From assembly GCA_964188305.1 (NCBI GenBank), contig OZ076893.1: DNA of 64,000 bases. One strand, 5' to 3'. The number at the start of each line of letters is the position of its first letter. Positions within the stretch are counted from its first letter, which is position 1. The notes under the pieces are model-generated. The model was not told the origin of the DNA. It searched no databases and saw nothing but the letters and a program-made list of their open reading frames with translations. Position numbers and translations under genes: made by a program. Source of the stretch: Podarcis bocagei (lineage: Eukaryota). Below are positions 1,391 to 29,481 of this stretch, piece after piece.

Positions 1391-1682
1391 NNNNNNNNNN
1401 NNNNNNNNNNNNNNNNNNNNNNNNNNNNNNNNNNNNNNNNNNNNNNNNNNNNNNNNNNNNNNNNNNNNNNNNNNNNNNNNNNNNNNNNNNNNNNNNNNNN
1501 NNNNNNNNNNNNNNNNNNNNNNNNNNNNNNNNNNNNNNNNNNNNNNNNNNNNNNNNNNNNNNNNNNNNNNNNNNNNNNNNNNNNNNNNNNNNNNNNNNNN
1601 NNNNNNNNNNNNNNNNNNNNNNNNNNNNNNNNNNNNNNNNNNNNNNNNNNNNNNNNNNNNNNNNNNNNNNNNNNNNNNNNNN
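1391..1682. other. Assembly gap (292 N)
   Basis: Run of N. Confidence 1.
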
Positions 1683-1752
1683 CTCCACTAAATGATTTAG
1701 CTTTAGATGGCTTCTCAAGTTTCATGTGGTCGTTAAAGAAAGCAAAAAGGGA
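1394..1752 (-). CDS. PLAG1: PLAG1 ATG-containing exon (human exon 4 equivalent); only the 5' 70 nt are visible, the coding part lies in the N gap
   Basis: Poly-T acceptor ttttttttccag|TCCCTTTTTGCTTTCTTTAACGACCACATGAAACTTGAGAAG matches the start of human exon 4 as recalled. The 3' boundary is inferred from the recalled ~359-nt exon length, not seen. Confidence 0.8.
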
Positions 1753-4700
1753 CTGGAAAAAAAAATAAGAAACAACTATTTGTAACTACACTTAATTTTG
1801 AAGTTTACTTGCTATGTGATGTTTTTGAATAAAGCTTATATAAAATTAGGTTCAGCTGGTCTAATGTAATATATGTAGGCTCATTTAAGCTATTTATCAC
1901 AGCTCGTAATTCACTGCTCAGGATGGACAGAACCACATATGTGCTGAAACTACATCTTGCCATTCTTTTGAGGTTCTTGAGGCAATGTAGTAGTACTGCA
2001 AGAATTTATCTAAGCCTTCAATAAAAGTAACTGTTCCTATATTTCTGTAGAAAACAGTTTCGTATCTTGTATCAAATCAAAGTGATATTGCTAAGTGAGT
2101 GCCATCTACTGAAGAAAAAAAAGCACAATTCAAAAGGAATCTAGTCTGAAGCAGCACTGTAAACTGGACTAAAAATAATGGTGCATGATACAGCACTCCC
2201 ATGACTATACTACTACAGAACTTTGGGGGAAATGCAAGTATGAATAGCCTTATACAAAATTTTTTATTGCCTGTGGAATACAAAATGTCAAGGAAAAGTC
2301 CCAGTGAACAGATAACTATAATGTCTAACTCAGTGTCTTCTGCCCTTATAGTTATTTATGCACAGAGACTTCAAAATACAATGATGATGATAATAAGTGT
2401 ATTCAATCATGCAAATCCTCAAATTGCATTTCAGAGTGCTATAGTCCTGAATGGTCTGTACCATGCAATTGTTCTTCATGTGTAGAAGACCCTAATATTA
2501 GCTACATAAGGATCTGACTGACAGCCAAGCTGTGGTGATTTAGTGCTCAGGAATTATATGGGCACAAGTATGTCAACATCTACAAGAGTTATCTAATCCT
2601 TGCTTTTAGTAACCATGAGCACTCTGCAATCCTCTATTCCTAACAGTACTGTTTTTCAAATATTAAAACTAAGCTGAGATCATAGATAGCAAGGCCCAAG
2701 AAGCTATTAAGGAAACAGATTGGAGGCTAGATATGCAACTGACAGATACTAAAGGTTTATAAGGAAAGACAAGCATAAGCATAGAAGGTACCGTAATAAG
2801 ATTCACTCAGTGGTGTAGTTTGCATGTCATGGTAAAGCAAACTATGGCTTACTGAAACCAAGTGAATGTGACGGCTCCTGGAGAGAAGCTCACACCTGCT
2901 TTGCTCCTCCCCAAGCCTTTTAGCAGTATGGAGTGGCATCCCAACCCAAGATCATGATGTCTCCTCAACCACGATCTGTAACCAAAGGACAAATCCCAGG
3001 TTCAGAAGACACACTAAGCTGAACCTTGACTTAGCTGTTGCACCACACTGTGCTAAAAGGTTGGGGGAGGACCCAGGCTCTTTTCTGGAGCCAACATGTT
3101 CATGCAGTTGCAATAAGCCACAGCTTGGGTTACAGTGATATGCAAACTAGGCCAGTTCCTCCTAACTGAACGATTGTCCGTAAAATCTTTGGTGCTTTCA
3201 AACAAACCATGTATTCTAATGAACACCTAGTTACCACCCAAATATTTAATCTGTATATAAACTTTTGAAAAACTTGATATTGTTTTAAAAACATCTATCA
3301 GTGGATAAAAAAATAAACCTACTTCTTGGGGGACTGGGAATGGCAAAATGTATAGATTAGCCTAGCATGTTTTTTGTTGTTTTATTGATTTCTGCACTTC
3401 ACATTGTAAAAAGAAAATGATTTTGCTATTCATAATTTGTGCCAATGTCTTTCTAAACAAACTAGATAAATGATGTAAGAAAAAAAATACCTCCCTTTGG
3501 GAAAAGTGGTAATAATTATCTCCAGGATGTTTTATCCACATGCTAAAACCTGGTAGTAGCAGATTCAGCTGGTTATTTGGGGAGCAACCCTCTACAGACA
3601 TTAAATTCTAGATTTTTAGGCTTGGCTACCACTACACTTTAACATAAGGAAGTTCGCAGACAGCAAGTTTCCTGTCTCTTCCACCCCCTTGCAGCCACCT
3701 GCCCTTCATGAAAAGCCTTTCTGGAAGTCATGGAAGCGGTGGTGTTCATCTGAATGCCCCTGTTGTACAGCAGCCTCATCATGGCTGTACAGTCAGGACC
3801 AGAATGCAAATTTGTGTGCTCCTGTCCTCCCGAGTGAGCATCCCTAGCCTCTGATATTTAGGGCTTGCTAAGATTGATATTATGCCTGCATCAGCAATTT
3901 CATTAACCACACTTAGCATCAACCACAGTTGATTTTTTATAAAGTGACTATTGAATATGTAGGTGCAGTTGCAATACCAATAGTTAGCCCAAAACTGATA
4001 GAGGGAGCCAGACCCATCTGAGAAGGCTCAAACCTCAGGGTTCAAGTTCTCGGGGAACTGCTGATCTCTCATGTACTCATGATTAGGCCACTGGGAAAGC
4101 CCAAAATAGTTCTAAGAGCTTTTTAACAGCAGAGAGGAAAGGGCAACTATGAAACTCACAACTGACACACTAACTGGGGGTGGGGTGAGGGACTACATTT
4201 TTTGATAAAATGGTACATTTTAATGCATCTTCCACAACAAACTGAATAACATACCCCTATTTGTTGTGTCAGATACTGATACTCTAAGGACGTCCTAAGT
4301 GAAAAGGAACTGAAGCTGTTCCAGTGACCAATTGTTGTGTCCCTCAATTAGCAACAAAAGCAAACAAGTGCAAGTCAAACTACAAATGAAAAATAAAGCA
4401 CATTTAATTATTTGCCTGCCATCTTTCTAACCTTTCCTTATTGGTACCAATAATGTTTAATTAAGAAAATATGATTAAGTAGGAACTGGGAAGCAGAACA
4501 TGCATTCCCAAAATTCAGTTGTGGGTCCCTATAAAAGTATTAAGCGAATGAACTGCAAAACCTAAGTGAGCACAAAAAAATAATAAACTACAAGAAGTGT
4601 TTATGGAAATACTTAATGAATTCAGAAAGAAAGCATAACATCTCATGGTGATTACTGCTTCATCATAATTCCGTAGCCTTATGGCATCTTCAAGCCCTAT

Positions 4701-6098
4701 AAAGGAAGCTACACCTATAGTGAACTGCAATTTTATCTACCCACATAGATTTAGTGGTAAGATTTTCAAGGATTTGTCTCAATACAGTGATGACATTGAA
4801 CAAATTGTAAGGCCTTAGAAGTACCTTGGAAAAGAACTAGAACTGCTGCCTTCTGATGTCAGGAAGTTGTGAGTAAGCTCAACCATATATGTTTGTGCAT
4901 GTGTGTGTAATTGCTATACTTAAAAAAAAATGGGTGAGACTATCTCAAGACCCTACATAGAGCACAATCACCTGCACCGTGGACCACAGGTAGTGGTGTG
5001 TCCAGCTGTACAGCAGGAGGGGTATGACTGAAAGAGAAAAACCAGTATGAGAAATGCTGAGCCCTTGCCCCAGCAACAGGTTTTTGTTCTTATTTTTGGC
5101 GACCAAAACCAGTCCCCCTAGCCACGTTTCATTTTGGTCTATGAGTTCAGCTACTTGTAATGGATTGTGGGGCTCAAAAGCTAGGGACAATGAATTCAGC
5201 AATCCTCTTTCACCACCTCTCTTTCACTTTAAATATACTGTGCTTTAGAGTTGCACTGCAGACCCATGTTTGAATGCTCAAGTCTACTGCTACTACATCT
5301 AGCTAAGGCCTCAAGAATATTTAATTTAAGGAGTTGAAACTATGTGCTGAATAAGAAAGATCTTTATTGCTCTGGAATCTAACCACTGAATTCATTACGA
5401 TGATGCAAATGCTAATAAATTAAGTGCAGCTATGTCCTCATATAAAAACAGTTTCAGCAGGCAGGATCCAAAGAGGCGTGTGCATGCATGTACAGCACTT
5501 CCAAGAGTACCGGGGTGGGGAAGTTGATCTTCCCTTACAACTGCACCACCTTGTGCTCACTGAATTCTCTCCAGAGTGTGCCCTAACCGTTAGAAGCAGC
5601 TGGGAGGAGAGAGAGGGAAAGGAGAGGGATGCACGCAAGGAGCTTCAGTAGAAAGGGTGGATCAGTAAAGCCCTAGTGCAAACATAGAACATTGCATATG
5701 GTCCTCTGGAGCCCAGCCATTTAAATTTGGTTATGCTGGTCCTGGAATAAATTTCTGATTAAACCACTCACTGGCTTATTATTTCTAGCTATCTAGATAA
5801 GCTAATTCAATTGTGGATGTACAGGCTGAGCAATGCAGACAGGATTTTAACATTAATGTTCGAATATTACACTTCTCAAAGACCAGCTGAAAAATTTTTG
5901 AGTCACAATGCCTATTTTCAGCTTCAGTATATTATTACTTATTCATATTTGTTCTTTCACAACTATAGGATGGATGATACAGTTATTAGAAACCATATTA
6001 AATCTACGTTAAAAAACAATACTTTTATATATTTTGTACCATTTTAAAAGGTGTTCATACTCAAAACAGATTTATGGTAGCCTCTGTTCAGTGCACAC

Positions 6099-6202
6099 CT
6101 GGTGATGGATAACGAAGAAAAACCTTCAGATTTTGGTCTTAACCAGTTCCACTGACATGTCTAGGAGCAAACCAGAATCCAGTGCTTCCCATTTTTGTTG
6201 AT
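6099..6202 (-). other. PLAG1: PLAG1 non-coding 5' leader exon (human exon 3 equivalent), 104 nt
   Basis: ttctgctttgtttttcag|ATCAACAAAAATGGGAAGCACTGGATTC...CATCACCAG|gtgtgc; resembles the recalled human exon 3 (AAAATGGGAAGGATTGGATTC...ACTGGCTAAGATCAAAGTCTGAGG). Confidence 0.8.
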
Positions 6203-8309
6203 CTGAAAAACAAAGCAGAAGGGGCTAGACATTAGTGAAGAGGTTGACTTCAGAAAACTAGATATCAATGGGAAAGAAAAATAGCCTGTGCTCATACTTT
6301 TTATGTTATATAACAATAATTAACAGTAATCATGATCCAGATTTTCTGCATGCAAAGAACAACATATCTTTTCTCTAGACAGGACTAGAAGACAGCAAGT
6401 CAGAAGAGGAGATAAGCTAGAAAGCTAATATAGTCTTCTCCCACCCTTGGTGCTAAGACAACAGTGTTGCCCAACAGTACACTCCTCTTTCTGGCTGCAT
6501 GCAATCTTCTAGTCTTCAGCAGACTAACAGAACCAGGAGCAGTTCTGCACATAGGATCCAAGTAACTGAATGTGCCCAGAGGAAGAATGTTCTGTGAGAC
6601 ACTGCCATTACATGAGAACCAGGAGGGATGATGTAATCAATCTTCACTACTCTTCTTGTTTGCGTCCTCATTCCCTGTTCTGTTCCTTCCCCTTGATTCA
6701 CTCACTTGTTTCCAGTCCTTTGCACATGGAATCAACATGCTTTACAATGGTCAATGCATACCAGCTTACCATTACTTTTTAATTTAATGCACGTAACTGA
6801 TAATGGTGAATTACAAAAGGTAGTAATTCCATAAGCAACGGCAATACCATAAGCTAAAGAACTCCAAAGATGAGAGTACAAGTGTTTGAGTTCCACTTTG
6901 AGGTGTGGGTGCATGCATGCATATGATTTGAATGAAGAAGTATCAGTTAGAAGAATAGTTAAGCACTCTTCCCCCATCCTGTCTCTTCACCAATCATACA
7001 TGTCCCTGAAGTGGGGCTTCCAGTTATGAAAAGGGATAATGGGCAGCCATTACACGCACTTATACATAACTTGCTCCATCGTCTGCAAGTATGAATTGCA
7101 ATATGGATCAAATTCAAATTCTTTTTTTAAAAAATAAGGACCCACCTTATTTCTTTAATTTTAAGTACTGTTAAACTGTTTTAATACTGTGTTTTAATTG
7201 TTGTAACCTGCCCTGGGACTTTGGGTGAAGGGCTGCTAATAAACTGTAGCAATAATAATACAAACAAAACAATTTCTCAATCCATTTACATTAGAGAGAA
7301 CAAATTGACAAGACAAACAATGTTACTTTTCATGTGTTGGACAAAGATTAGCTTTAAAATGAAAAGATTACTGTATTAGTTTCAAAGGCCTATTCACATA
7401 TAACACTAAGCCATGGGTTATATAGGCAAAGTGTGATTTGTTCAGCCATCCGAAGCATGCCCAGCAGACTAACTATGGTTAGACTAACAAAGCCATGGTT
7501 TGTTGTTGGCATATGAATCATGATTTGTTTTTAACTATGGTTTGTCATTATGTCTAAATCCTGCAGCCTCACCTAACCATGGTTTGTTTGACAACCCCAC
7601 CTCAGACTCACACCAAAAATGGTCATCCCACCATAGATACAATCATAAAATATAAAACTATAACATGCAATCTAAACAGTTTTAATAGGAAGCAACAAAA
7701 AACAGAGCAGACAATGTCTGAGAAATGTTAGAAGTACTAAAAGAAATAACTTATTTATTTCCACTGGGGATGGGCTAGGAAATTTTAGAATACAATCAAG
7801 AAAACAAAAAATATAGTTATTGTTGAATTCACTATTGTTGTTTACTTTATACAAAAGAGATACTGTTCAACATTTATACATTGATATTGTGTATGATTGA
7901 CTCAAGAATAAGATATGCACAATATTAGAGAGTATTCTCTCTTCCCACAACTTAAAATAGAATGAAAACAGCACTTATCAAAGCGAACACTTCCATTCAG
8001 ACAGATGTTCCTATTCTAGTTGGTTTCATATAAAAATTGTTTAATTAGGGTGAACACATGAAGACCAAAATGTAATACTTATTCCAGTACAATTTTTATT
8101 AATTATTTACAAAAAATTTCACACATCAGATACAATTTATATGTTCAAGTTAGCAATGTATTATTGTTAATACATTGCACATATTTAGTGTACTTAATAA
8201 TAATGATAGTAATAATAATAACAATTTTAATATTTATACCCCGCCCATCTGGTTGGGTTTCCCCACAATGCATCAAAGCCAATATTCTCACTGTAGTTCC
8301 TTACTGTAG

Positions 8310-8445
8310 CTAGTTGGTAGAAGAGGAGGCTCTTAATCTCAGGGTTGTGGGTTTGAACACCACATTGGTCAAAAGATTCCTGCATTACAAGGAGTTGGAC
8401 TAAATGACCTTCACAGTCCCTTCTAACTCTATAATTCTATGACTC
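8310..8445 (+). mobile_element. Squam3-like tRNA-derived SINE
   Basis: tagttggtagaag...ctcttaatctcagggttgtgggtttgaac...ttggactaaatgacc...cccttctaactctataattctatga. Confidence 0.7.
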
Positions 8446-8816
8446 TCTGAAAAGCCTGTCCAGAGGACTGGGATGTCTCCTGAATAGTAGCTTCAGTGAG
8501 ATTGCTTTTTGCAGGCTGTGCTGGTGCCAGATAGTAGTACTACACCTGCAAAAATCTAAAATCTAAAAAAAAATCAAGACTTTTATCACAGACACGTGTG
8601 TGTTGATGACCTTTCGCCATTAAAAAGAAAAACTGTTTTGTGAGGTTCCTCCCACATTTGGTTATCAAGATAAAAACACAGTGCCCTTTTCTCTCTCTCA
8701 AAATGATAACATTGTAAAATGAAGTGTATAATATCAAGTTGTGATTTTATATCTAAATAATCATTTCCCTCACCCCAATGACACTCGCACTTTGTTTGGA
8801 TATAACTTTTAAACTA

Positions 8817-8967
8817 CAGGGGAATCCCCACTTACACGGGGGTTCCGTTCTGGGACGCACACAAGTGGGGATTCACCCATTCTGCCCTGCCCTTTTTTAT
8901 CGCCATTTTTGGCACATTTGTCAGCAGGAGCACACATGCTGATTGTGCGCAAGTTGGGAGACATCTG
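8817..8967. mobile_element. Tc1/mariner (Tigger-like) MITE remnant
   Basis: TA|CAGGGGAATCCCCACTT...AAGTTGGGAGACATCTG|TA; degenerate TIRs and TA TSD. Confidence 0.55.
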
Positions 8968-10287
8968 TATATTACTGCTTCTTAATCATATATTTCAGTT
9001 TAAATTTTTTTTGGACATATTTATTAAGGCATATTTCTGCAGGTTTTTTTTTGTTTGTTTTGCTTTTAACAGACTGGATCAAATGCCAGTACGTTTATAG
9101 AACCAGAAAGTTTTCCTGTTCAAAATATTACAAAACAACCCACAACACTGGGCATATAAGAGTATTAACAGACTTGTTAGATCAGATGAAGTCTAGTGCA
9201 GCTTTGTTTTCAATGGTGAATAGCCAGATGCTTCTGTTCACAATCAAGACATGAATATGATTCTATTTCCCACCTGCAAGTGTCCCTAGCATCCAGTATG
9301 GAGAGTTATACTGTCTCTGAACGTGGGTTTAGATATTATGGTTGATAAGAAGTACCTTCAATTCGCAGAGCTGTGGTAGAATACTAAAAAAGATTCATGT
9401 ACAGGTGTGGTTAGGGGTAGTTTGACAGGACTGGTAGGGTTTATAGCATTCCCACTTCTGGGAGGCATCAGCCATCCCTGCTTGTAAACATGGGAATGCA
9501 CCTATAATTATAAATGTGAATAAAAGTCAATGTACAACCTAACTAAGAGCTCGTCCACTTGTTCTGTGTCTAAAAAAAATGGGGCCGGTCTGAGTGCTAT
9601 TCTGCTGGTCCCGTGCTTTCTAGGCCTGGGTCTGAATGGCTATGTGTTTGCCCCCCAGCTTTCGCCTAGGAAACATACTCTTGACTGCTGAATAGGAAAA
9701 AAACAACAATCCACAGAAAACCCAATTGCAATTTGGTCTGATTCAGTGGTAAACTGGGGGTTTCTCTGGGGAAAAGCAGCGGGACAAATGGAGGTGTGGA
9801 TGAGACCCTAAAAGGCATCATGATATGACGCGTCATGGTTGGACGAAGGAGACCAGAATCCTAAATCAGTTCTGTAGTCAATTTAAAGAATGAAATATTG
9901 TGCCCATTTTTCAGTCAAACACACCTGACCAGATTTTTGTAAGCATAAAAGGAGTCATCCTCAGGAATACCGGATTACATATGTAATAAACGTTTGTTAA
10001 AGCAAAAACATACAAAATAATTAAAAAAACCTTCACCCACCTTTCAAGCCAGACATGTAAATAACCACTTGCCTAGATATGTAGCAGCTCACAGGCAAGT
10101 GGGAACTCAGAACTCTTGATCTGCAGTACATCCACATCTCGTGTCTAGCCCTTTAAAAATAAAAAAAAATTCCATCGCAGAGGGCTGAGGAAACTTTACA
10201 CTTTCCAGGTATCAGAACCCAAAAAATGCCTTTTACCAGTTCTGTCTGGTTGACCAGCTACAGCTTTTCTTGAACAGTGATAACTTA

Positions 10288-10745
10288 ATAATAATAATTT
10301 ATTACTTATACCCCTCCCATCTGGCTGGGTTTCCCCAGCTACTCTGGGCAGCTTCCAACAAAATATTAAAAATACAATAAAACATCAGACATTAAAAACT
10401 TCCCTAAACAGGGTTGCCTTCAGATGTCTTCTAAAAGTCAGATAGTTGTTTATTTCCTTGGCATCTAGTGGGAGGGCGTTCCACAGGGCGAGTGCTACTA
10501 CCAAGAAGGCCCTCTACCTGGTTCCCTATAACTTTGCAGTGAGGGAACACCCAGAAGGCCCTCGGTGCTGGACCTTAGTGTCCGGGCTGAACGATGGGGG
10601 TGGAGATGCTCCTTCAGGTATACTGGGCTGAGGCCATTCAGGGCTTTAAAAGTCAGCACCAACACTTTGAATTGTGATCAGAAACGTACTGGGAGCCAAT
10701 TTAGATCTTTCAGGACCGGTGTTATGTGGTCTCGGCAGCCACTGC
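10288..10745 (-). mobile_element. L2 LINE 3' portion
   Basis: (AAT)n tail plus the typical squamate L2 3' sequence (atacccc.cccatctggctgggtttcccc...agggctttaaaagtcagcaccaacactttgaattg). Confidence 0.8.
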
Positions 10746-10769
10746 TGTTATATGTGTTGGTAACCTAAA

Positions 10770-10885
10770 ACTACGAACATGAGTTTGACCAAACTGCGGG
10801 AGGCAGTGGAAGACAGGAGTGCCTGGAGTGCTCTGGTCCATGGGGTCACGAAGAGTTGGACATGACTAAACAACTAAACAACAAC
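10770..10885 (+). mobile_element. RTE/Bov-B-type LINE 3' end inserted in an older L2
   Basis: catgagtttgaccaaactgcgggaggcagtggaagacagg...catggggtcacgaagag...(CAA)n tail; flanked by AACCTAAA direct repeats (10762-10769, 10886-10893). Confidence 0.75.
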
Positions 10886-10893
10886 AACCTAAA

Positions 10894-11260
10894 GGCTGGA
10901 TTACTGTAATGCATTCTATATGGGGCTTTGGAAGTTCCTGATTTGGAAGCCCATACAGATAGGGGTGCATGGCCGACACCGTGACACCACTGTTAAAACA
11001 TTTTCACTAGCTACCCATTTACTACTACGTCATGTTCATTGATTCGCAAAGCCCTGAACAACTTGAGAGATCCAAGGTACCTTATATTTCAGCTCAATCA
11101 CTGAGTTCATCTGCAAGAGCATTGTTAGTCATCTCCAAAAGCTGGTAAAGCTCACCTGACAGCAATAAGAAATTGCACTGACAGTTCTAGAATGCTCTGC
11201 CAATAAAGATTCAGCAGACATCTTCTATTTTAATTTTTACATTTCCACTGAAAAGCCCCC
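10894..11260 (+). mobile_element. Old L2 ORF2 3' fragment
   Basis: YVLVT/RLDYCNAFYMG motif, interrupted by the RTE insertion. Confidence 0.6.
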
Positions 11261-11506
11261 TGCTTTCTTTTGCAAATAGCACTGCCACTTTATCTTTTTT
11301 TGTACCTGATGGAGACCTGGTAATTGACCACAAAAATGCAACAACATGTACGCTAAAGCTCACAACTTACACACTTTTAACTTGTATGCATTCAGCTTTC
11401 CATACTTGGCAAAAAAAAAAAAAAAGAATAAATACCAAGGGGGTGGATATCCAGAAAAGACTTTGGCAATGCCACCTGTCATTGAATGTGATGTGTTCTG
11501 ACTATA

Positions 11507-11708
11507 CAGGCAGTGACCATTTTAGGAATGTCTAATATGTGTGTGACTGCACATGCACACATCACGCCAAACTTAAAGTGACCCAAAAGTGACAAAAAGG
11601 AGTAGAATAGGGAGTTTGCAGGCTTTTTAAATGGGTGTTCTGACTATACACAATTTCACGTAAGCGTGCAGTACCTCGGAACATAACCCCTGCACAGGTC
11701 ACTGCCTG
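11507..11708. mobile_element. Tc1/mariner MITE
   Basis: TA|CAGGCAGTGACC...GGTCACTGCCTG|TA; 12-bp perfect TIR. Confidence 0.8.
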
Positions 11709-14700
11709 TATTTAAAATGTAATTGAACATAAAGGAATGCAATGTTGTAAATTAAGATTTATAAGCAAAAGTAATAAACTGGTTTGAGAAATATAACTGA
11801 TTGATCGATAAGAATGATTGTTAGGTGCTTCAAAGCCTATTTAGTTAGCTTGTCAGCTACAAAGTTTCGGCATAGCTGATCACAGATAAAAATTACCTTA
11901 ACAATCTAGTGTTAGGAAATATAGGAAGTTAACATGTGAGAAACCTGCTTAGGAACTGTAGGAAAAGGTCTGGTACATGTGGAACATCTGTGTGCAGATC
12001 GGTGTCCCTATGGGCTAAATATTAACCACTTTTAAACGTCAATCTCTGTAGAAAAACAAATTCTGAGTACCCGTATCAGTCAGTGCCTGTAATGCTGGGA
12101 TAATATTCCATAGGTTAAAAGAATTCTAACATCAACTAGTACATTGCAACAATGAGCATGCTATATATACCTCATTCTAAATAAGTATTTGGTCGTGCCA
12201 GTTCTGGACTTCTTGCTATGCCCATGCCACCTCCTTTCTTAAGGTTCTGGGAGTAAAGGGGGAGTGTCTAAGTTTTAGATGGGTTTGGTTACTGAAGAAG
12301 CAGGCAGATTTCTTTGGGGCTAGAAATTTGGGCAGGTCTACTGTGACACTGGGTTCTTTGGGGTCTGCAACTGGTAGTGGCAACATGCTTGCTCACTGGT
12401 GGGTGGAGGGAGTCCTGCCCTTTTTGTAGTGAACATAATTTGTGCACCCAGATGCTCCCCCAAGTTGCTGTATGGCTAAAAGAGTGCGGTTAGAAGGGGG
12501 CCAGTTATGAGAATCATAGAGGAAGCAGCATTGTTATTTGCATGTCAGGGTCCAGCAAGGAGACCTTATAGAAGGGGACCTGATGAAGAGTGTGTGTAGC
12601 AAGTAAGCACATATCCACAGGTGACACTTTTGGGGCAAGGTAGGTACAGTGCACTTAAGTACTCAGGATGCTGAGTCATAATGTGAGTGGAGTTCATGGG
12701 CAGAGGTGGTACAGTTCATTCAATTTCCATGGGAGAACTCTTCATACAGACTTCAGAGCAGGGCATCTGCTACTTGCAAAGTCATATTCTTTGCAAAGTG
12801 TCACACTCCTCCATGCTTTGGGCCATCTCAGGTATTTGCATGTTCCCTGCTTCTTTCTTCCAGGGCTCACATGCTCACTTTGCCCTACTCTGCACATGCA
12901 AACCTCATGAGACTCTCAGAGGACACCGCTACCACTGGTCTACATGTAGCTGATCGTTGGATCAGAAGAGGGAAACCCACTTAAAGAATTGAAAAACTGA
13001 CCCTAAAGAAGGCAAATTGCTGAAAACAGAACCCTGGATGACTGCAACAGAAAGCAGAAGTGTAAGTGATAACAGAAAAGAAGTACAGAAATAAATAGTA
13101 CTCAGGTGGGTGGGTGAAAAAAGAGAATGGTGGTCAATAGCATCAGAGGCTAGTTATAAATCAATAATGGGGAAAGGTGTCAAATGTCATAGGGAGCACT
13201 CACCCTCATGGCATAGCTATCTTAATTTCCCCGGCTTTACCACTGTGTGTGAAATAATTTCCTCTGATTTAGAATGCAAACTCTTGTCTCTGTTTTAGCA
13301 CAGAGCAGAAATCTCCACTTGTCACTGCCACCAGTCTCTGTGATTACTAACTCAGATCAGGCATACCCTGGGTCAATACTTCAGACCAATTCCTATACAG
13401 AAAACCAAGATCCTTTTACATGAGATGGAATATAAAGTCAAATGACTGAACCAGCACCACACTTAAAAGTTTTATACCATTAGATACTATTACATCTTCA
13501 TGATCCCAAATAATCTTTCTGACTGCTTACTGTCCCCACAGAGCTTCAGCATAAAGTAACTGGACAATATAATGTGATCTCCAGCTGTGCTTTTAGTTGG
13601 CCAACCAAATGACAAATATAGTGGTTTAGTGTGAAATTCCTTTTGATGGATGAGTTTTGGCAGGTAAGCTGTTCCATTCAATAGGCTTCCTCTCAAAAAA
13701 CCCACAATGCGTTTAATTTGCAGGGGAATTGTACAGCTCTATTTTAAAAGCTGGTGCACATAAAAGTGAATATGGTATCAAGCCCATATTTTCTATGGAT
13801 GTGTCGTCACAACTGTCAAATAATTTGCAATTAGCAGAAAGGTATGTGATTTTATTTTACCCCCGGTGTTTTATACATGCCCTGCAGAATGCAAGTTCAA
13901 ATACATTTTAAAAAGATACTGATGCTTACTTAATATTTGCATCCATAGTTCAGAATCAGTTATGCTAGGATGGTATAGCCTTCAGTTTCAGGAAAGAGCC
14001 ATGGTGCTTATAAATTCACTCAAGCGTGGAAATAGATATGACACCTGATGAGCGCCATACCCCATAGTTGCTTTTGACTGGACTTAACCATCCAGGGGTC
14101 CTTTACCTTAATTCCATACTACGTAAGTACTACACTTTCCTACAGTCTCATATTGTGCTTACATACAGCTCAGTATTTATGCATCCACATTTTCCCTTGA
14201 TCTGTGAGCAGACTAGATCTGCAGGTCAAAGTAACCTAATGAACTAATCCAGAGGCTGAAAATCAACTAAAATTATGGCAGCTGCTATCCTATATACCCC
14301 GGGCTCTCACTTTTTCACACAAGCACAATACCACATTAAAATAATGTGGTATAAGTTTATTGAAAGAAGCTTGTGGGAGTTAGATTTTAAGAACTCCTAA
14401 AATGTACATGTGTGCTAATAATCTAAAAAGGAGTACCAGAGATAATACAGAAAACTGCAGTGCTTTTCTTTCAGAAGACTCAATAACAGTGCCAGGAGAA
14501 TTGTCAAACGTGGTATTTCATTCAACTTGTAATTTTAATTAGATAATCCTCACAAGTTATACTATTGCTAGGGAAGTGGCAAAGAAGTCTAGACTTGTTT
14601 CTTAAAAGTTTAGAAATTCATGCCAATAACATCCAAACTTAGGACCGAACTTAACTAACAGTTCCTACTTTTAAAAACATTGGGTGGAATGCAGCTAGTG

Positions 14701-14754
14701 TCTCAGCAGAGGAACCCTTTAATGGTTTAATTAAAGCAAGAAACTGCTAGGAGC

Positions 14755-17369: not shown

Positions 17370-18605
17370 GCTTATGGAGTGCTCTTCAGCCCCATGAAAC
17401 TTTCAATGTGGAGTTCCTCAGGATTCAATCCCCACCCTTAAACTACTGAAAACCACTGAGTGGGATTATCCAGAAGTTTGGAGTACATTGTCAGCAATTT
17501 GCTGATGACACACAGCTTTACTTCTCCTTTACATCTGTAGGTGCGACTGTGGATGTGCTGGACTGCCTTGATAAGGGACTGGGTAAGAGCCAACTCACTG
17601 AAGCTCAATCTAGATAAGACCAAGGCAATGTTAGTGGGTGGTTCCCTAGACCAGATGGAAGCAGTGGACACACCGCTGTCACTTGAGGCTCAGGTGGTCT
17701 TAGTGGCATGGAATGCCTTCCATCAGTTTCAGCTAGAGGCCCAGTGCACCTCTATTTGGACAGGAATAGCCAAACTTCTGTTGTCTATGCTCTGGTAAAC
17801 TCTAGGTTAGATTACAATGGGCTCCCTTTGAAGGTGAATTGGAAATTTCAGCTGGGGCAGAATTTGGTGGCTAGGTTGTTCACCAGGGTAAGAAGGTTTG
17901 AGCATGTTACAACAATCCTGTCCCAACTGCACTGGCTGCCAGTTAGTTTCCCAGCCCATTTCAAAGTGCTGGTTTTTACCTATACAGTCTTACCTCGGGC
18001 TGAAGTAGCTTCGGGCTAAGTATTTTCAGGTTGCGCGCTGCGGCGATTTGGACGTAACAGAGCATGTTACTTCTGGGTTTTGCCGCTCGTGCAGACAGTC
18101 AAAATGATATCACGCGCATGCGCAGAAGCGGCAAATCGCGGCCCGCGGGTGGCGTCCGCTTCTGGATGTGAACGGGGCTCCGGAACGGATCCCATTTGCA
18201 TCCAGAGGTACCACTGTAAAGCCTTAAATAGATCAGGACTGCAATACTTCAAAGACCACCCTCTCCCCATATGAACTGGCATGGACCCTGAGATCATCCT
18301 CTGATGCCCTTCTTCATGAGCCTCCTCCACGCAAGGTCTGGAGAGTGGCAACACGAGAACAGGCCTTTTCTGTGATGGCTCCCCATTTGTGGAATGCTCT
18401 TCCCAGAGAATATGGCACCTTCAATACATTTCTTTGGACACCGGGCAAAAATGTTTCTCTATAACCAGTCCTTTGGGTGATTAAATGTGTTTGTGGAAGG
18501 CAGAATTATTGGGTTTTAAAAATTATGTATTGTTGTCATTTTGTATTTTTATGTTATGAACCACCATGTGTTCTTCAGATGAAGGGCTGTATACTAATAA
18601 AATAA
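17370..18605 (+). mobile_element. L2 LINE (RT C-terminus plus 3' UTR), interrupted by a MITE
   Basis: QQFADDTQLYF, WVRANSLKLNLDKT, VVYALVNSRLDY and LHWLPV...FKVLVFTY|KALN motifs. Confidence 0.85.
17985..18216. mobile_element. Tc1/mariner MITE nested in L2
   Basis: TA|CAGTCTTACCTC...GAGGTACCACTG|TA; removing it restores L2 ACC TAT AAA GCC TTA. Confidence 0.88.
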
Positions 18606-19959
18606 AAACATCTCACACTAGTCAGAATTAGCATGTATACCTTTTCTGTGAATAGGCTCACTATTCAACTAACATTAGTTCTGGCATTAAAATCTAGTAA
18701 TTGAAGATGGAAACATCTGAGCAGGTAACCACATGGAAAAGGTTGCATGGATATTTGATCACTCTCTTATCTAAAACTTAGAATGGTACGAAATTACAGT
18801 GTATTTCTACAAATGCATAGAAACATGTATACTTTTAGAAGGGCTATAAGTACCAGATTCCTTTAAATTCTTACTGAGGCATGTGTTTGATGAAACTTGG
18901 ATAAAAACATTTGTTTCTGTTGAAGTAGCAGGTTTCAGTTTATTTAGTGAATCTGGTGGTGAATGTTGAACTATTTTCTTAAACGCAAGTCCCATTCCTG
19001 CTGAAAGACATCTAGGATTTCAGGTTTTTGTATGAATACATGATGTTATCACTGTCCTTGATTAAAAAGCATACAAGTTAGAAAGCACTTGGAATAGTGT
19101 GGCATAGCTGAATAATCTAACAATAAAAATGCTCTGTAATGAGCTTCTTGATAAGTGGGAATGTCAACCCAATTCAGATTTGTCACTTAATTTCAGGATG
19201 CTGGGCCCCAAATTCATTTATCCTCAACAGAAACATTTGACACAGGTTGAGAGGAAAAACTTGCCTAAGTTAACTTAAACAAGCTTCATGACTTTGCAGG
19301 ACTTCAAGCCTTGGAAAACTCACTTTATTCATTTATTACACAATACTGGTCAAAATTATACACATTTCTTTGATCATAATGTACACATCAAAATTATTTG
19401 CCCTAAGACCGTGTACTATTGTAGACAATCTTTCATCAGGCAAAACAGGGACTCTTTCATCATCAAGTGAAAGGGAGGGGCACCAACTGGATTCCAATTC
19501 ATGGCTTCAACCCAACTAAATCACTGCAAAAATGAAACAATTTCTGTTAGTGCAATGACAGTTCCCTTCCCCTTCATCCAAATACCTCCTAAATCTGCTC
19601 TGTGGGGTTCCCTCAGCCCTCTGGAGCAGATTAGAGGGTGTTGTAGGGGGGGGGAGAGTGAGAAGTACTGTTGCACTTGTGGAAACCATTTCACCTGCAC
19701 AATGATTTAGTTGGTTTTTATGACCTATAAAATGTAAGTGATCATATTGCAAAACGGAGTTATTGTGCACCAAAATAAACCAATTCCAATGGAATTTGGG
19801 ACTGAATTCACTGGACTGTAACAAATATTTATAGACCATCCAATCAATATAATTGTGAAAAACAATAGGGCACCTGTTCGATCTCAACTAGAAGGGAGTT
19901 CTACAAAATTGGCTTTACAATACTGAATGCACAGTTCATGGTGGATAAAAACCATGCAT

Positions 19960-20700
19960 TTGGGGACTCATTGGGCTGAGGTACCTCTAGCTGCACCATG
20001 GATCTTAATGGGGTCCCATCGTTGAAGGGGGAACTGGTAATATAAGATCAAAGCTTACCAAGAAATGGTCTGACCATAACAATGGGGTTATCAGGACACC
20101 TTTCTCCATTTCCAGACTCTCACTCCCACCTGCCCTGAATCAAACACAAGATTGAGGGTGTGATCATCTCTGTTTGCCAATGACAAACAGACAGTCATGG
20201 AGGTTATAAAGCCAGCATGGATGTTTAGTCCTCAGAATAACAGTTCTTCAACACCACCTTAGCAAACTCAGTCCAGAAGGGTTAGGGGTACACAAGCAAC
20301 ACTCCCAGTCTGTCTTGATGGCCAAATAGTAAGCTCTCAAAGCCCATTCCAGATCAGGGAGGTTTATTAGCCAGATAAATGAATTATATGGACTATAACA
20401 ACTCCAACTCGCACATGTGTGTTTATCCAATTCAGCTGGTGCTGTAGAAAGCACATAGGTGAACACACTTTCTTGATATCTAGCCCACATATGTCTCAGA
20501 AACGCATCCCAGAATGGCTCCCTCGTGAGTATGGTGTTATTGCGAACTGAACTGGTGTTAAACAGCTTCATTGTCGGAGCAGAAGGCCCAACAACCAAGC
20601 TACTAGCAGACAAGAGATGAGGGAAAGATCAGAAAGGGACATAGTCTGTACATGGCTGTGTCCCTTTTTCTGCAAATGGTATGTTTGCTCTCCAGTGTCA
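19960..20700 (-). mobile_element. Degenerate L2 ORF2 endonuclease (APE) fragment
   Basis: Minus-strand motifs LFNTSSVRNNT (NARS-like), DRLGVLLVY, HTLNLVF and PLLWSDHFLVSF. Confidence 0.65.
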
Positions 20701-23700
20701 TAACTTCTTCTGCCTGTAACCAATGGAATCAAGGAAAGCCTACTGACCTCCCCAGGCACATCCCAGAAAACTATCATGACTCTGCTCCATCCACCCTTAC
20801 AATATTAATTCTCAATATCCAGTTAAACACATACAGGATTTCCGTACCAACATAAAAACACTCAACACAATCTCATCCAACCACTACCAGCCCATAATCC
20901 CCAAGAATATCTATACAAGCCAACTTTTCATCAATCACTTACTACCACCACCTAGCAGTCAATGCATCAAACCTATTCCTATCCCATTCTATTTCCACAA
21001 CCGCCACACATAGTCTCAAGCCACCCAGCACTCATACTGTAAACAGATCCCAGTTGAATCCTCCACCCTAGCTGAAGGATTCCATTATCAAGCTTTCACC
21101 TGGTCATAGGTGTAGGTCCTATCCCAACACTCAGAAGATTTGTATTCCAACTCAGGAATCCTTCAAATGGGCACATGCAGCCACTAAAACCGAAAGAATA
21201 GTGCCCTTGCACCTTCCTAAAGCAGAACCCTTGCTTTGGTGTCATACCCTTTGGGGTTGCCTCTGCTGCAGTACCCCACCACTGCAACTCACTGTTTTAT
21301 GGAAGTGCCGCTTATATCTCCATGGGTCCAATATTCACCACTGCCACCTCTGCTTGGTAGTTCTCTGGCAAGCGTTGCTATTTGGCAGATGGTCTCAATC
21401 AAGAAAGCAATGACGGTTATCAGGAGCTAGGGTGGTTAGGTGTTTAAACAAAATTAGGTTACTGAAACAAATCAGTAAGCATATTGGATACAGTTGACCT
21501 TTTTATTAAAGTAATTTATTTTCTTGTTTCAAACTAATCTTTACTTGGTAATGGATCTGGACTTTAGTAGCAATCAGCCCAGCCACAGACTCCTTGAGTA
21601 ACTGTGGGAAATCATTTAGCCTTCTGTAGGTTTGAGAATCAAAAATATTTCTTCTCCACTCCAAGTCTCAGGATCAGAGCATGCTATAAAATCACAGTTT
21701 TTATTAATGATAACATTAAAAGGCAACTATCAAGCTATATGTATCTAATTCCTATTAAAGTTGCTTGTTTGCTTGCTCGCTTGCTCAAACAACAACAGTA
21801 TCCTCTCCCAATGGATTGAAATGCATTTTCTATCTGTTTATGGGAAAGTTCTTACACTTCAGTCTATACATATTTCTAATGTGGACACTGAAAAAAATAC
21901 ACGTTCCAACTGAACTGGCATTTTCAATAAGCATGCAATGCTGCATCTGCTCTTTAGATGCATGGTTCATAGTTTCTTAAAAGTCCCCTAGAGGAAAGCG
22001 ATTAAACCTGCATCAACTACACTCTCTTCCAACAAGCACAATCAGCTTTAACAATATCTGTTTGACTTGACAGAAAAGTTTAGTTCCAGAAAGTTTTTTA
22101 AATTGTTTGTACTTAGTAATGTTACTATTACTATGACTAATCTATTCTGAACATGCAAATAATAGTTTTGTGCTAGTTAAGAATACTAAATGATTTGCTG
22201 TGTAACCTCAATAAAAAATGTCAGCATTTTAAAGAAAACTTTTAGTATCAAAATATATACAACTATTTAATACCCAAAGCATATTTTAAACAATTATTTA
22301 CACTCCAAGTAATATTTAGAACATGATTTACCAGTTGTAAAGTTAACAACTGACATTTAATATTAAGTATAAAAATATTCCTACTCTTTTAGAACAAAAA
22401 TGTTTTGTATGATTTTCTATCTATCAACACACACAAACACACATGAATGAGGTTCTCTTGGCTGAACAAATCTTGATCACCAGTACGTAACTAAAATATC
22501 TTTAAGAGCCTTATGATAACAGTAGCATAGTATATTCAGGATACGTTATATGCTATCATACAATACATATAACTTTATAACATATAATATATATCTCATA
22601 CGCTAACATAACAAAACAAGTTTCTTTCACTTCTCAAAATGTAATTGCAGAACATTGCAGCCATCTCTCATTAAGGAAACACACTGAAGAAAGAAACAAC
22701 TATTCAATAACATATTTAAATAAGCTTGGACTATCCCTATTGCACTTGTCAAATGGAAAAAATACATTTTGTAACACAGTACTTTATTAGTTACTTGACC
22801 AGCACTTTGCAAAATTAACATAGTAGCTACAAATAAGTAATTGCTTTTGTAATTAAAATCAGAGATCCATGCTTAAAATCTGCTTAAATGGCAGAAATTC
22901 AATGTAACCATAGTAATTTTGAGTTTGATGTTATTGTGGGAGGGACATTATCACAGTATTCAAGATTAAAGGTATGTTAAAAATTAATGAATCCAGTTCA
23001 CCTTGTCAACATATGAATCAGATCTTAGCTTTTATAAAAGTAGTATTTGTCCATAAAAAAGCTGATAACTAATTCCCATTAAACACTTTCTAATCTGATT
23101 TCTAGGGATATTCTCCACAAAGCGACACTTTTGGCTCAACAAGTGCAAATAAGATTATAACAGCTTATGGCCAGACACTTTCTCCCCATGCTGAATTTCC
23201 TAATTTTTCTTTAAAAGTATATTTTCCTTAATTCTCTTTCTGTTTTCTTGTTAAGTTCCTAATACTTCATTTATTTAATGCAAGATATATGAATTCCATT
23301 TTGAATATTATAGCTTAGTCTTAGAACACATTCAATTTAAAAAGAGCTGAATTAAGAAATTATGCTATCTTGCAAATAACCTGCTTCATTTTCTTCTTGG
23401 AAATTATACCAGTTATTACTATACTCACACATTTTAACATTTAATGGGATATAGATCTGGCAAGAGATATGCATACATATGAAACATTCTACTACTATGT
23501 ACATTCTTTAATACAGCAAGTTCAGAGAATATATATTTAAACATACTGAGATAGGTAAAAAAACCTGTTTTTATAAACTAACTAATGTTAATATGACTGC
23601 ATCATCTTTTCTACTTGAATTCAGCTTACATATAAAAAATCCCAGCACTCACATTAACTTTGATGGCAATTTTGAAGCAATTTAAAGCACAATCCATAGA

Positions 23701-26700
23701 TTATATGAATTCTAACAATTGTTTTGATCAAAGAACATGGCACTTTCAACTGATATAAACACTTTTTGGAAACTGAATTCTTAGGTATGAGATTCCAAAA
23801 GTTATTTTTGCCAAGTCCTAAAACATACTGACAAATATATATGCAAAGGATAGGTAGCTAGTATATAAGATACCAATCAAACAATTATGTATAAAAACAA
23901 ACTTTAACATTTTAAAGGCTGACTTAGTGCTGGGTAAGATAGTGCACAGAATATTCTAATTGCTACTTATGCAATAGCAAATGAAATCTTTGCAATAACA
24001 AAGAAAAATACTAAAATTTCCAATAAAGAAGCAACATATTCAGTCTACTGATTCTATTCACAAATCCATGACATTTCCAAATCAAGAACTGAACTACAAT
24101 TATATATATATGTTTTCTTCCTAATATATTATCTATTACTGAAATGTTTTACTTGCTTAATGCAGCAACCATCCATCATGTGTTAGATTTCAAACACATT
24201 TTGTATGTCAGATCAGTACAAAATATTACATTGTTCACATATTTGAATTGTTTTACATTGTTCTGAAAGGCTTTCTAAATAGTTAGAAATTGGTTAAAGA
24301 TGGTCAACAGCTCATTTGGACAGCTATTAAATCTTTCTACTAAAACAAATGAATGGTATCTGCAGATATTTGCTTTCAGAAGCATACCATCAACATATAT
24401 TCAGATTTTCCTTTTAGCACTACAGTATAGTGAACCACAAAAGGGGTTTGAAGACTATACCCTAAAATATAAGTTTCTTATAATCAAAGTAATGTTTCAG
24501 TATGATTTTATGGTATATCATTAAGTGCATAAAATTATTAAATTGTCACTATTAGTGGCAGAGGATTTTACCACTACAAGGTGCTTTTCTAAGAGTACTC
24601 CAACTCCATAGCAAACTCTCAACATGAATAAATCAGCTGAATGCACTGAAGTGAGCAACTTCAAATATATGTATTAACAGAGTAAAATTGTGGTGGTGAG
24701 TCACCATTTTGACAAAAAAAATGCTTAATAAGAAGATGACAATTAATTACAATTATATTTATATACACCAACATTTAAAACTTACAATGAAAAGCTCAAA
24801 AACTACTTTAGACTTCAAAGGTTTTGCTTAAGGCAAGTAGTGTCACCAAGTAGTTTGGCCAATAAGATTCACTCAAGACACCTTGGAATCTGTCTGCAAA
24901 ATCTATAGTATATAATAATGGATCTACATTATATGAATTATAAGAAATTCAACTAATTTCATAGAACATTGTTTTAACCAATCAACTAAAATTATATGCA
25001 AGTGCTCCATAGTTTTAACAAAATAGTTCTCAAAGATAAATACAGCTTTATCAGCATCCATAAATTCAATGTTTCAGGCTATTTTTCTACTAACAGTTAC
25101 TTTTCTCAGTCTCCTTACTGTTAAATGTATTACTGGAATGAGTATTCAAACTTAAAGGCATTAAATTTGCATATGATGGAGAACTTTCATGACAGAGGAA
25201 GAAAGCAAAATTGTAATTTGTGCTTTCAGAAAAATGTATTTCTTCCACAATGCTTTTACCATGATACTTAATAATTGTACAGCAGATCTGTATATACATC
25301 TAAAGATCCAAATGCAAGTTTTGTACTTCTGCATATCTACAAAATAGCTTTAAAATTTAGATTAGGAAAAGCCACCAGACTTCATGTGTTCTGACTTCTG
25401 AGCTTAACAATTCATGCCACAAACATTGTTATGGTTAATGCCTGTGATAAAACGTGCATGCTGTATCAAATGTATTTAGGATAAGAACTGACTACAGGCT
25501 AAATTTCTGCTTATTATGCTAGGTGCACTTATGAACCTAGTATCTTAACTGGTAGATGAAAATGATCTACAAACACTAGTAATTCATGTGACATTCTTAA
25601 ACCATATGGCATGCATCAGCCATTTGCAAAGTTTGCTTTCAGATATTTTCTATTTTGATTTAAATGATAACGTTTATGCCAAAAATAGAGTTGTTTTCAA
25701 TAAAAAATAAATGTGTATACAACTCCATGTTAACAGATCAATGTTCCCCTTATGAGCTGATTATTATTATTATTATTTATTAAACCTGTATACTGCCCTT
25801 CACCCAAAGATCACAGGTGATTCACAACATAAAAATACAAAACGAGAACACAAAATACAATAAAACAAACCAATAACCCCCTCCCACAGACACATTATTA
25901 TTACTATACAATTTGTATAAATTCATTCTCTAAGAATAAATGACGCAGTTTAATTTTGGAGACCGTGTCATTGGAAAACAAGGTGCTTTCACCTGAAGCC
26001 ACAGGATTATCCAGGACAATAGTCCACTACATAATGCAATAAAGGTACAAGACATCTATGATAACAAATGATGAAATCTTATGTACACTGGAGAATCAAG
26101 CCCCTCAACACAGTGAATAGAAAATTGATTTGGTATATAAAGAACAAAAGAAAGTATAACTGATGGAGTTTCTCTCGAGATTTGGTCCATCTCTTTGAGC
26201 AGAATACGTGCTAGCAAGAGTTTAATTTAGATTTAAATCAAGACAGTGAAAGAGCAAATCACTTGAAATGAAAATGTAATTGTGCATAAGAAACACAAGA
26301 TCTGAGACAATAGATTTCCGAAATACCATTCTACTACCCAGCAGCATTTTAAACATTTAAGCTAAGTCTTTATAGATAACATTTCTTATCATGGAAGTCA
26401 CACATTTATAAGTTAAAGATACAGCAACATCTATCATAGATGCTTTCTTGGAATCTGTTTCAATTAACAAACATTTACTGTCCAACAAATAATAAAAGCA
26501 CAACTATGTAAGATTTAACCTAAAATTAGAATTTATTTCAATAAAACCAAATCTAGAGACATTACACAAATCTGTAATAGCGCAATTTAGAACACTGCAT
26601 GTATTCTAACCCCTTGAATATTGCATGTTTGAAATATGAACAGGTTTGTATTTTAAATCAATGGAATGAAACAGAAGATATCCAAACAAGTTGTCAATGT

Positions 26701-28422
26701 CTGCAAAATGGCTTTAAAATTATACCATAAAGTCCACTATATGTCTTGTGTTCTTCCAGCGACTTGAAAACTAGCAGATTATTATTATAATTTAGGCTAT
26801 CTCTACACACACCATTCTAAATCCAAGACACAACAATAGAATTAAAATTCAGCCACCATACCAAAATCTTGAGTTGCATCACAGATAATAAATGCTAGGT
26901 CCAAACAATATCCACCAATTTCTCCTACAAAAGGGGTAAGCCAATCACTGTTTACACCTCAACAGCCCCCTTGGATTTAATGCAATCCACCAGGATAAGT
27001 AGCCACTGGCTTGCCTTCAGAGTTTGATTTATGGTTTTACACTTTAACAAATCCAAGCCAACTTTAGCCAGAACTTCTGCATAGGTGAGCATAGCTAGAA
27101 GAAAAGAGGAGCTGTCTCTTTAAGATACCATGCTCTGTCCCTGATCCCACGTGGAAACCAACATCAGCAGCACTTTCGCGTTTAGTTCTATGTGATGCAA
27201 GTTGAGGCATCATTTTTTAATAAACATGAGAAAATTGCAGAATACATTCTTCCCCGGAATACAAAATTGGTGAAAAAGCATGCTAAAGTAAGCCCCGGTT
27301 CTCCTCCAAAAGTGTAGTCTCACTATGTGTATTTTTCATTTTTTTTCTACGGCACGTTGCTTCCAGTCCATACTACTCTAACAGAAAGCACTTCACAGAC
27401 AGTGGACACAAACACCGGGATCCATAGGCAACGAAAAGGTACTCCATAAATCGGAAATATTTGCTCTTTTGCATTACATATCATAATTGGGTCGGGAGAA
27501 AAGCAATGCATAGGTATTACATTTCGCGCCACCTCCCCCCTTTCCCCCCACATGTGCCCCCCCAACAAACAAAGGGCACGAAAGCGAAGGTACAAAGTTG
27601 GCAAATGCAGCATTTATCTCCTGTGCAATCGCTCCTCGTTGCCCCAAAGTTGTGCAGCTCGTGCATTCCCACCTCCCACCACCATTCAAGGGAGAAAGGG
27701 GATTTTCACGTTCTCGCATTGTCGGGAACGAGCTGTAAAAGAGCTTTTGCCTTTCCAAAGCAGTCATCAACAACAAAAATAGGCATCAGTTTTAACTCCT
27801 TGCTCTCTGAGAGCTGAAACCCCGACGTGAGGGGACGCAGGGTTCAACCTGATCTCTTAGGGGAGAAATCGGGGGACGGAGACGATTTGGGGCATTTTTT
27901 AGGATTTTTTTGGGCTATTTTTTATTTTGTTATATGCCTCGGTTCTCCCTCCATTTTGGTTGTTTATGATACTGACAACAAGCTGTCCCTGCTCTCTCTC
28001 CAGATCTCTCCTGCTTCCAGTTAGAGACACCCCCCCACCTCCCCAATACAACCCACCCTCCAAACGCCTTCCCCAAACTCCTCTCTCGTACCCACGCAAG
28101 AAGGGAAAGAAAAGCCTCCGCGGCCGGTCCAAGTCAGGCGGGAGGCAATCTCGTCTCTTGATGGGGTGGGGGGGGGGGAAGGAGAGGAAAAAACTTTTGT
28201 CCAATAAAAAGCGGGAGGAGAAGGGCGCTGCACGCCCCAAAGCGACTCGGGAGCCCCCTAAAGCTTTGGCTGCGGGGTCCCCGCCGCCCCGTCCCGAGAG
28301 TGCAACCCGCCCGCGACATTTCTGCGCAAAATGTGGCCGCTTTGGTGCTACGGCTGAATTTATATTAATTTTCTCTCATTTTTTGGGCACCGCGGGCTCT
28401 TAATGTCTTCCGCTCCCTCCTC

Positions 28423-28450
28423 GCTGCTGCTGCTGCTGCTACTGCTGCTG
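28423..28450. repeat. (GCT)n trinucleotide repeat in PLAG1 intron 1
   Basis: (GCT)6 ACT (GCT)2. Confidence 0.9.
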
Positions 28451-28923
28451 TCACTATATTCAAAGCACAAGCTCCGGAGCTCGGGGGGGGGGGGGAGAGA
28501 TAGAGAAGAGAGAGACTCCGAGCGAGGAAAGCGAGGTTGGGGGGGCTGGGGGCTTCTCAAAAAAGTTTCTGCCTCCCCGTTTGTATAACAAGAAACAAGG
28601 GGGAAGAAGAAGGGGGGTGCGATCCTCTCAGTGAAAACCTCACTGAAGGAGTTGGGGGGGGGGAGCGGAGGAGAGGAGAAACGAAGTCCGAAAGCTGAGG
28701 AAAGCGAGGCTTTCTTTCGAGGGGCTGCTCCTGGGGACCCCCGCGAGAAGCGCGACGCAGCCCAGGAGTGCAAGGGAAGGAGATGAAGCCGCACAAACTT
28801 TCCCTCATCGCTGCCGCTCCGCTCTCCCCCCTTCTCCTCCTCCTCCCCCTTCAGAATTTAAATAACCCTAATATTTCCCTGCTGAACCCCGGCTCCTGAC
28901 CCCCAAACCCGCAGCAGACTCAC

Positions 28924-29100
28924 CGCGGGAGCCTCAGCATCCCCTCAGCGCCCTCTTCCCGCCTTTTACAGGGTTCTCCGATTTTTCTGTAATTTTTTCC
29001 CCATATTTCGGGCTGGACGCGGCGGGCCTGGAAATTGTTTGCTTTCCCCTCTTTCCAGCAGCCATTGTAGTGTATGCGCTGCGGTGCAGCTCAGCCTGCC
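28924..29100 (-). other. PLAG1: PLAG1 first exon (5' leader); TSS position approximate
   Basis: ACAATGGCTGCTGGAAAGAGG...TTTCCAGGCCCGCCGCGTCCAGCCCGAAATATG...CCCGCG|gtgagt with a consensus donor at 28922-28923, inside the CpG island; matches the recalled human exon 1. Confidence 0.85.
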
Positions 29101-29430: not shown

Positions 29431-29481
29431 ATTGGAAGCGAGTCCCGAGCCCGCGAGTCGGTTTCCCTCACGGCGGCTGAG
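29425..29481 (+). other. CHCHD7: CHCHD7 non-coding first exon (start approximate)
   Basis: Ends in a consensus donor GAG|gtgagt at 29482; downstream of the TATA-like and CRE-like motifs. Confidence 0.7.

Follow-up and report, generated by a model that had tools for sequence, protein, structure and literature searches.

The PLAG1 leader and its upstream AUGs

The 64-kilobase (kb) stretch of the Podarcis bocagei genome analyzed here (contig OZ076893.1, one strand; referred to below as the window) contains two genes in a head-to-head arrangement, PLAG1 (minus strand) and CHCHD7 (plus strand). Our subject is the transcript leader of PLAG1, which holds a series of upstream AUG codons, most of them opening short upstream open reading frames (uORFs). 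PLAG1 dosage governs body size in livestock and in people, and over-expression of the gene drives pleomorphic adenoma and lipoblastoma. Exon structure was assigned from conserved splice sites and homology. The start of exon 5, which is coding, occupies 863-1 on the minus strand and gives a 288-residue translation with 89-93% identity to frog and mammalian PLAG1. The sole run of N in the window (1391-1682) hides most of exon 4, including the end of its uORF and the main AUG, and was left unfilled. On the other side of PLAG1, CHCHD7 is represented by coding exons at 34217-34270 and 35578-35676 (plus strand) and by a probable non-coding exon 1 at 29400-29482 (plus strand, ends approximate), which is followed by a GTGAGT donor at 29483 and lies about 330 nucleotides (nt) from PLAG1 exon 1. 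A 64% GC island separates the two genes, and PLAG1 exon 1 is inside it.

PLAG1 exon 1 (28924-29078, minus strand) is a conserved block that extends to a GTGAGT donor, and its 5' limit is the edge of that block rather than a transcription start site. The first AUG of the leader region, at 29065, is in strong context (ACAAUGG, with A at -3 and G at +4), with no further AUG in the 135 nt upstream of it, to 29200. It opens uORF1 (28934-29065, minus strand), which comprises 43 codons and a TGA stop. Nested in uORF1, but in a different frame, is uORF2 (28966-29004, minus strand), with 12 codons, a TAA stop and the start context AAUAUGG. A third AUG (28924-28940, minus strand) begins 4 nt ahead of the stop codon of uORF1; its frame is open across the exon-1 donor.

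The equivalent of exon 3 (6099-6202, minus strand, 104 nt) is bounded by AG and GT splice sites, with both acceptor and donor conserved in seven species. It carries a 17-codon uORF (6139-6192, minus strand) that starts in the strong context AAAAUGG (A at -3, G at +4) and ends in TAA. A nested AUG at 6158, which opens a frame of 10 codons (6126-6158, minus strand), is squamate-only and not conserved outside that group. A TGA at 6126-6128, 10 nt past the stop of the 17-codon uORF, is conserved in amniotes; it ends the +1 frame of lineage-specific nested AUGs and, in cetaceans, that of the third exon-1 AUG.

The visible part of the exon-4 leader (1683-1752, minus strand, with the acceptor at 1753/1752) includes a weak-context AUG at 1725 (CACAUGA, with C at -3 and A at +4), whose frame is open for the 14 codons that are visible before the N run. 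In six other species this uORF is 27 codons long and ends in a TAG 6 nt upstream of the main AUG, with which it shares its frame, and the first 14 codons in the window match. The annotated PLAG1 coding start in these species falls 90 nt after the exon-4 AUG. An N-terminal extension of PLAG1 beginning at AUG 1725 was considered and rejected for the six other species by the in-frame TAG; the corresponding stretch of the window is masked. In the spliced leader, the stop of the 17-codon uORF is 67 nt from the exon-4 AUG and about 157 nt from the main AUG.

The first-pass annotation of this DNA had proposed that every identifiable leader exon has an upstream AUG, and exons 1, 3-equivalent and 4 bear this out. 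The individual elements it listed are likewise all present, namely a 43-residue uORF, a nested 12-residue uORF and an AUG at 28940 in exon 1, a 17-residue uORF in the exon-3 equivalent (6192-6139) and, in the exon-4 equivalent, an AUG at 1725 whose frame continues into the N run. It was also correct in assigning three AUGs to a strong Kozak context (A at -3, G at +4), these being the ones at 29065, 29004 and 6192.

Conservation of starts, stops and codon counts

PLAG1 loci for comparison were taken from protein matches in Rice's whale, the common toad, a skink, an alligator, a warbler and a murine rodent, each covering at most 10 kb upstream of the coding start. Exon 1, which is 27 kb upstream, was reached through relatives of CHCHD7 in buffalo, Pogona and one cetacean locus, the last labeled from its CHCHD7 product (P0180), which agrees with Kogia CHCHD7 in 52 of the 54 residues aligned, including all of the first 51. 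The scope of the comparison is squamates and cetartiodactyls for exon 1, and squamates, archosaurs, mammals and the toad for exons 3 and 4. Relative to the window, exon 1 is 96.6% identical in Pogona and 78% identical in buffalo and the cetacean, with the donor conserved. The exon-3 region is 95% identical in the skink, the visible exon-4 leader has 94-98% identity with five amniotes and 80% with the toad, and introns stand at 75-84%. By the exon-1, exon-3 and intron values, the window comes from a squamate that is neither Pogona nor the skink.

Conservation of the uORFs across tetrapods, with equal codon counts, is demonstrated by these alignments. The window shares with distant tetrapods the AUG, stop and codon count of four uORFs (43, 12, 17 and 27 codons), together with the position of a fifth AUG. 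In all four species compared for exon 1 (window, Pogona, buffalo and cetacean), uORF1 has 43 codons, uORF2 has 12 and the third AUG occurs at an equal offset. The 17-codon uORF is intact in seven of seven species (window, skink, alligator, warbler, whale, murine rodent and toad). An in-frame stop closes uORF1, uORF2 and the 17-codon uORF within their own exons and closes the exon-4 uORF in the six other species. The first-pass annotation had described uORFs at the same places in the human leader, with equal lengths for the three complete ones, and for the non-human mammals compared here this holds. Its expectation of conservation across amniotes is borne out, with identical codon counts, in squamates and cetartiodactyls for exon 1 and also in archosaurs and the toad for exons 3 and 4.

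An excess of AUGs over chance was tried as an argument and rejected. The 329 visible nt of the leader contain six AUGs, counting the squamate-only nested one, as against 5.1 +/- 2.1 in shuffled exons; because the count equals the shuffle expectation, the presence of AUGs alone means little. It is the start, stop and Kozak positions that are conserved above their surroundings. In exon 3, only 40 of 104 columns are invariant overall, as compared with all eight boundary columns of the uORF (A at -3, AUG, G at +4 and UAA; hypergeometric P = 3e-4). Indels of 4, 5 and 12 nt in three lineages fall directly 3' of the 17-codon uORF, and none falls inside it. The four-species alignment of exon 1 begins with about 90 nt that are almost identical and continues with about 70 nt in which 55% of columns are invariant. 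Within this variable part, the TAA of uORF2 and the third AUG are invariant islands, and the uORF1 stop is fixed in position while being TGA in squamates and TAA in mammals.

In the case of the third AUG, the start is conserved and the product is not, judging from its reading frames. A 1-nt indel just ahead of the exon-1 donor shifts its frame between lineages. If exon 1 is joined directly to exon 3, the frame comprises 26 codons in squamates, in frame with the 17-codon uORF, and 30 codons in a different frame in cetaceans. A search for an exon 2 equivalent found none.

Selection at the peptide level was assessed with Nei-Gojobori estimates of the ratio of nonsynonymous (dN) to synonymous (dS) substitution rates. 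For uORF1, dN/dS is 0.97 (dN 0.265, dS 0.274), with rates of 0.04/0.07 in the N-terminal 21 codons and 0.56/0.54 in the C-terminal half. The exon-4 uORF gives 0.75-1.06 against the toad, at a dS of only 0.14-0.23. By these estimates, the 43- and 27-codon uORFs show no amino-acid selection, and their conserved stretches are held at the nucleotide level. For the 17-codon uORF, eight pairs give 0.3-0.8 when read in the uORF frame and mostly values above 1 when read in either of the other two, a weak coding signal drawn from 16 informative codons. Scoring by dN/dS, one of the checks that had been suggested, thus gave about 1 for the 43- and 27-codon uORFs and values weakly below 1 for the 17-codon uORF.

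A candidate translational brake and its alternatives

We consider it probable, with some reserve, that the PLAG1 leader is an old, conserved series of upstream AUGs that brakes PLAG1 translation in cis, at several steps. We infer the braking role solely from the anatomy of the leader. Because dN/dS is close to 1 for uORF1 and the exon-4 uORF, the reading frame as such, and not its peptide, appears to be what is kept, and for the same reason a cis-acting brake is favored over micropeptides. The earlier suggestion of a translational brake or micropeptide cassette is accordingly divided, with the conserved starts and stops agreeing with the former and the dN/dS of the 43- and 27-codon uORFs speaking against the latter.

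As we envisage it from the established rules of scanning, most scanning ribosomes would initiate at the strong first AUG, that of uORF1, and few would resume scanning after 43 codons. Those that leak past it would next encounter the 12-codon uORF, the junction-spanning third AUG, the strong 17-codon uORF and the weak 27-codon uORF, in that order. The last of these ends 6 nt before the main AUG, which would be too close for efficient re-initiation. PLAG1 protein would then come from the minority of ribosomes that leak past all of these starts or re-initiate at the right moment. Termination of uORFs far upstream of exon junctions might also expose the transcript to nonsense-mediated decay. The uORF peptides themselves would probably be by-products, with the 17-residue peptide as a possible exception.

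That exception is the core of one alternative, in which selection acts on the peptide of at least one uORF, that of 17 codons being the likeliest; the product would either stall the terminating ribosome as a nascent chain or work as a free micropeptide. The frame-specific dN/dS of this uORF over eight pairs fits such a role, as does the retention of residues 1-2 (M-G), 10-11 (P-R) and 15-17 (G-T-G) in mammals, archosaurs and the toad despite synonymous changes in their codons. However, the informative codons number only 16, the middle of the peptide varies freely, and neither uORF1 nor the exon-4 uORF shows amino-acid constraint; we regard selection for a peptide as improbable. Still harder to credit, and in our estimation very improbable, is that the exons have been mis-assigned or that the AUGs are chance features without effect. 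The AUG count, being equal to the random expectation, is what chance would give, but splice sites and exon order are conserved, the annotated coding start lies at the same 90 nt past the exon-4 AUG in six species, and the cross-species conservation statistics also speak against this view.

A more serious competitor, although we still hold it to be rather unlikely, is that constraints other than translation maintain the leader exons, namely promoter-proximal DNA elements of a bidirectional PLAG1/CHCHD7 promoter in exon 1 and splicing control around exons 3 and 4, with the uORFs as passive passengers. The first ~90 nt of exon 1 are near-identical in the two groups compared, squamates and cetartiodactyls, hardly differ even at synonymous sites, and may hold promoter-proximal DNA elements. 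Words of exon 1 are also present in sequencing runs of 11 organisms, further conserved non-coding blocks lie nearby, and conservation reaches the introns beside exon 3 (5812-6098) and exon 4 (1753-1957). Many species have an annotated isoform of 417-419 amino acids that begins in exon 5 and could arise by skipping of exon 4; because of this isoform, splicing control probably contributes to the conservation. Several of these facts bear directly on the proposed brake and count against it. The first 21 codons of uORF1 (dS 0.07) and the whole exon-4 leader (dS 0.14-0.23) are conserved at the nucleotide level, and conservation continues for about 200 nt into the intron preceding exon 4, so that the AUGs and stops of uORF1 and of the exon-4 uORF could have been kept by another constraint. 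To these must be added that the end of the exon-4 uORF lies in masked sequence in the window genome, that the exon-1 comparison spans only two lineages (squamates and cetartiodactyls), and that an exon 2 between exons 1 and 3 in some species may alter the fate of the third AUG. What tells against passive carriage is the variable sequence, in which the conserved islands coincide exactly with start and stop codons, the uORF1 stop exchanges TGA for TAA, and the exon-3 indels come right after the uORF with none within it. Moreover, a strong-context AUG in a transcribed leader captures scanning ribosomes regardless of any other role of the sequence.

Three side observations concern the same exons. 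The intron stretches 1753-1957, before exon 4, and 5812-6098, after exon 3, can be aligned from squamates to mammals at 66-89% identity, which fits regulated splicing. Across 20 sequencing runs from the 11 organisms, 72-100% of the 31-mers of the exon-1 region (28900-29130) were present; many of these libraries are small (41-106 million letters), so that exon 1 is near-identical in a set of relatives. Predicted RNA folding of the leader is ordinary (z from -0.2 to -0.35), and a search of the leader against Rfam matched no family.

Relation to known systems and to tumor fusions

In MDM2, with its long and short leaders from the P1 and P2 promoters, and in THPO, with its leader mutations, uORFs in 5' exons restrain output, and their removal raises protein. 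PLAG1 resembles both in that three of its upstream AUGs sit in exon 1, which is absent from fusion transcripts. It differs in that removal takes place by chromosomal rearrangement, in that two conserved uORFs stay behind, and in that the translational effect is, in PLAG1, a putative one. In human tumor fusions, exon 1 of the partner gene precedes PLAG1 exon 2 or exon 3, and the coding sequence begins in exon 4 (PMC13207982). Fusion transcripts of this kind would lack the three exon-1 AUGs, as the first-pass annotation had foreseen for promoter swapping, and would keep the exon-3 and exon-4 uORFs; because these two are retained, de-repression by such fusions would be partial. Were the brake real, transcript level would under-report the de-repression of PLAG1 protein in tumors. 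A fuller reading, which we regard as doubtful in its entirety, would combine a tetrapod-wide gate of five AUGs, oncogenic swaps whose gain in PLAG1 protein comes in part from loss of the three exon-1 AUGs and not from stronger transcription alone, and a 17-residue peptide (P-R, G-T-G) that serves as a regulatory nascent chain.

Like ATF4 and GCN4, PLAG1 has its uORFs in series, with spacing that could tie the next start to the speed at which initiator tRNA is re-acquired. Unlike the last uORF of ATF4, however, that of PLAG1 does not overlap the main reading frame but stops, in frame, 6 nt short of the main AUG, and the first uORF, at 43 codons, is long in comparison with the permissive first uORFs of 2-3 codons in GCN4 and ATF4. 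The delayed re-initiation architecture of these two genes was rejected for PLAG1 on both grounds, there being no out-of-frame overlap and a first uORF of 43 codons. Conserved peptide uORFs (CPuORFs) offer a second comparison. The PLAG1 uORFs share with them conservation over hundreds of millions of years and, in the 17-codon uORF, a weak coding signature, but two of them (43 and 27 codons) have a dN/dS of about 1. As far as the main text of the CPuORF catalog of Takahashi et al. 2020 goes, PLAG1 is absent from it (PMC7530721).

By the estimate given in PMC3738444, about half of human transcripts carry a uORF, and short AUG-initiated frames in the long, multi-exon leader of a transcription-factor gene such as PLAG1 are in keeping with ordinary vertebrate uORFs. 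PLAG1 is set apart by codon counts that are exact from squamates to mammals, and for two uORFs to the toad, and by the presence of five such AUGs in one leader. A literature search for PLAG1 uORFs gave only incidental matches and no paper that treats them, although large catalogs may list them; PMC10032668 is without a PLAG1 entry. Work on the locus has centered on transcription, through promoter swapping and through the (CCG)n and single nucleotide polymorphism variants that the bidirectional promoter carries in cattle (PMC5042058, PMC5359603). Five conserved upstream AUGs in the leader would add a translational layer to the control of PLAG1, one that is directly testable, and would mark variants that make or break leader AUGs or stops as candidates in growth traits and in disease.

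Other conserved elements of the locus

Within PLAG1 intron 1, a conserved non-coding block at 27074-27227 (minus strand) shows 80-82% identity to buffalo and the cetacean and has a CACGTG E-box in its core. It was considered as a possible exon 2 and rejected for want of shared splice sites; by its sequence it is enhancer-like, and likely an enhancer rather than an exon. The same intron has smaller conserved blocks at 27700-27760 and 28354-28471. A 90%-identity protein cluster that contains PLAG1 also includes MOS kinase entries from several birds, which is probably a database artifact due either to the proximity of the genes or to a fused gene model.

Upstream of PLAG1 exon 1, buffalo and the cetacean have a (GGC)n run, which reads as (CCG)n on the other strand, some 30-75 nt upstream of the uORF1 AUG (about 6390-6430 in L007 and 6760-6800 in L009, the buffalo and cetacean loci). 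The run is absent from squamates. Its position matches that of the bovine (CCG)n variant for stature, located between PLAG1 and CHCHD7 (PMC5042058). If the transcription start site lies upstream of the (GGC)n run, the repeat belongs to the leader.

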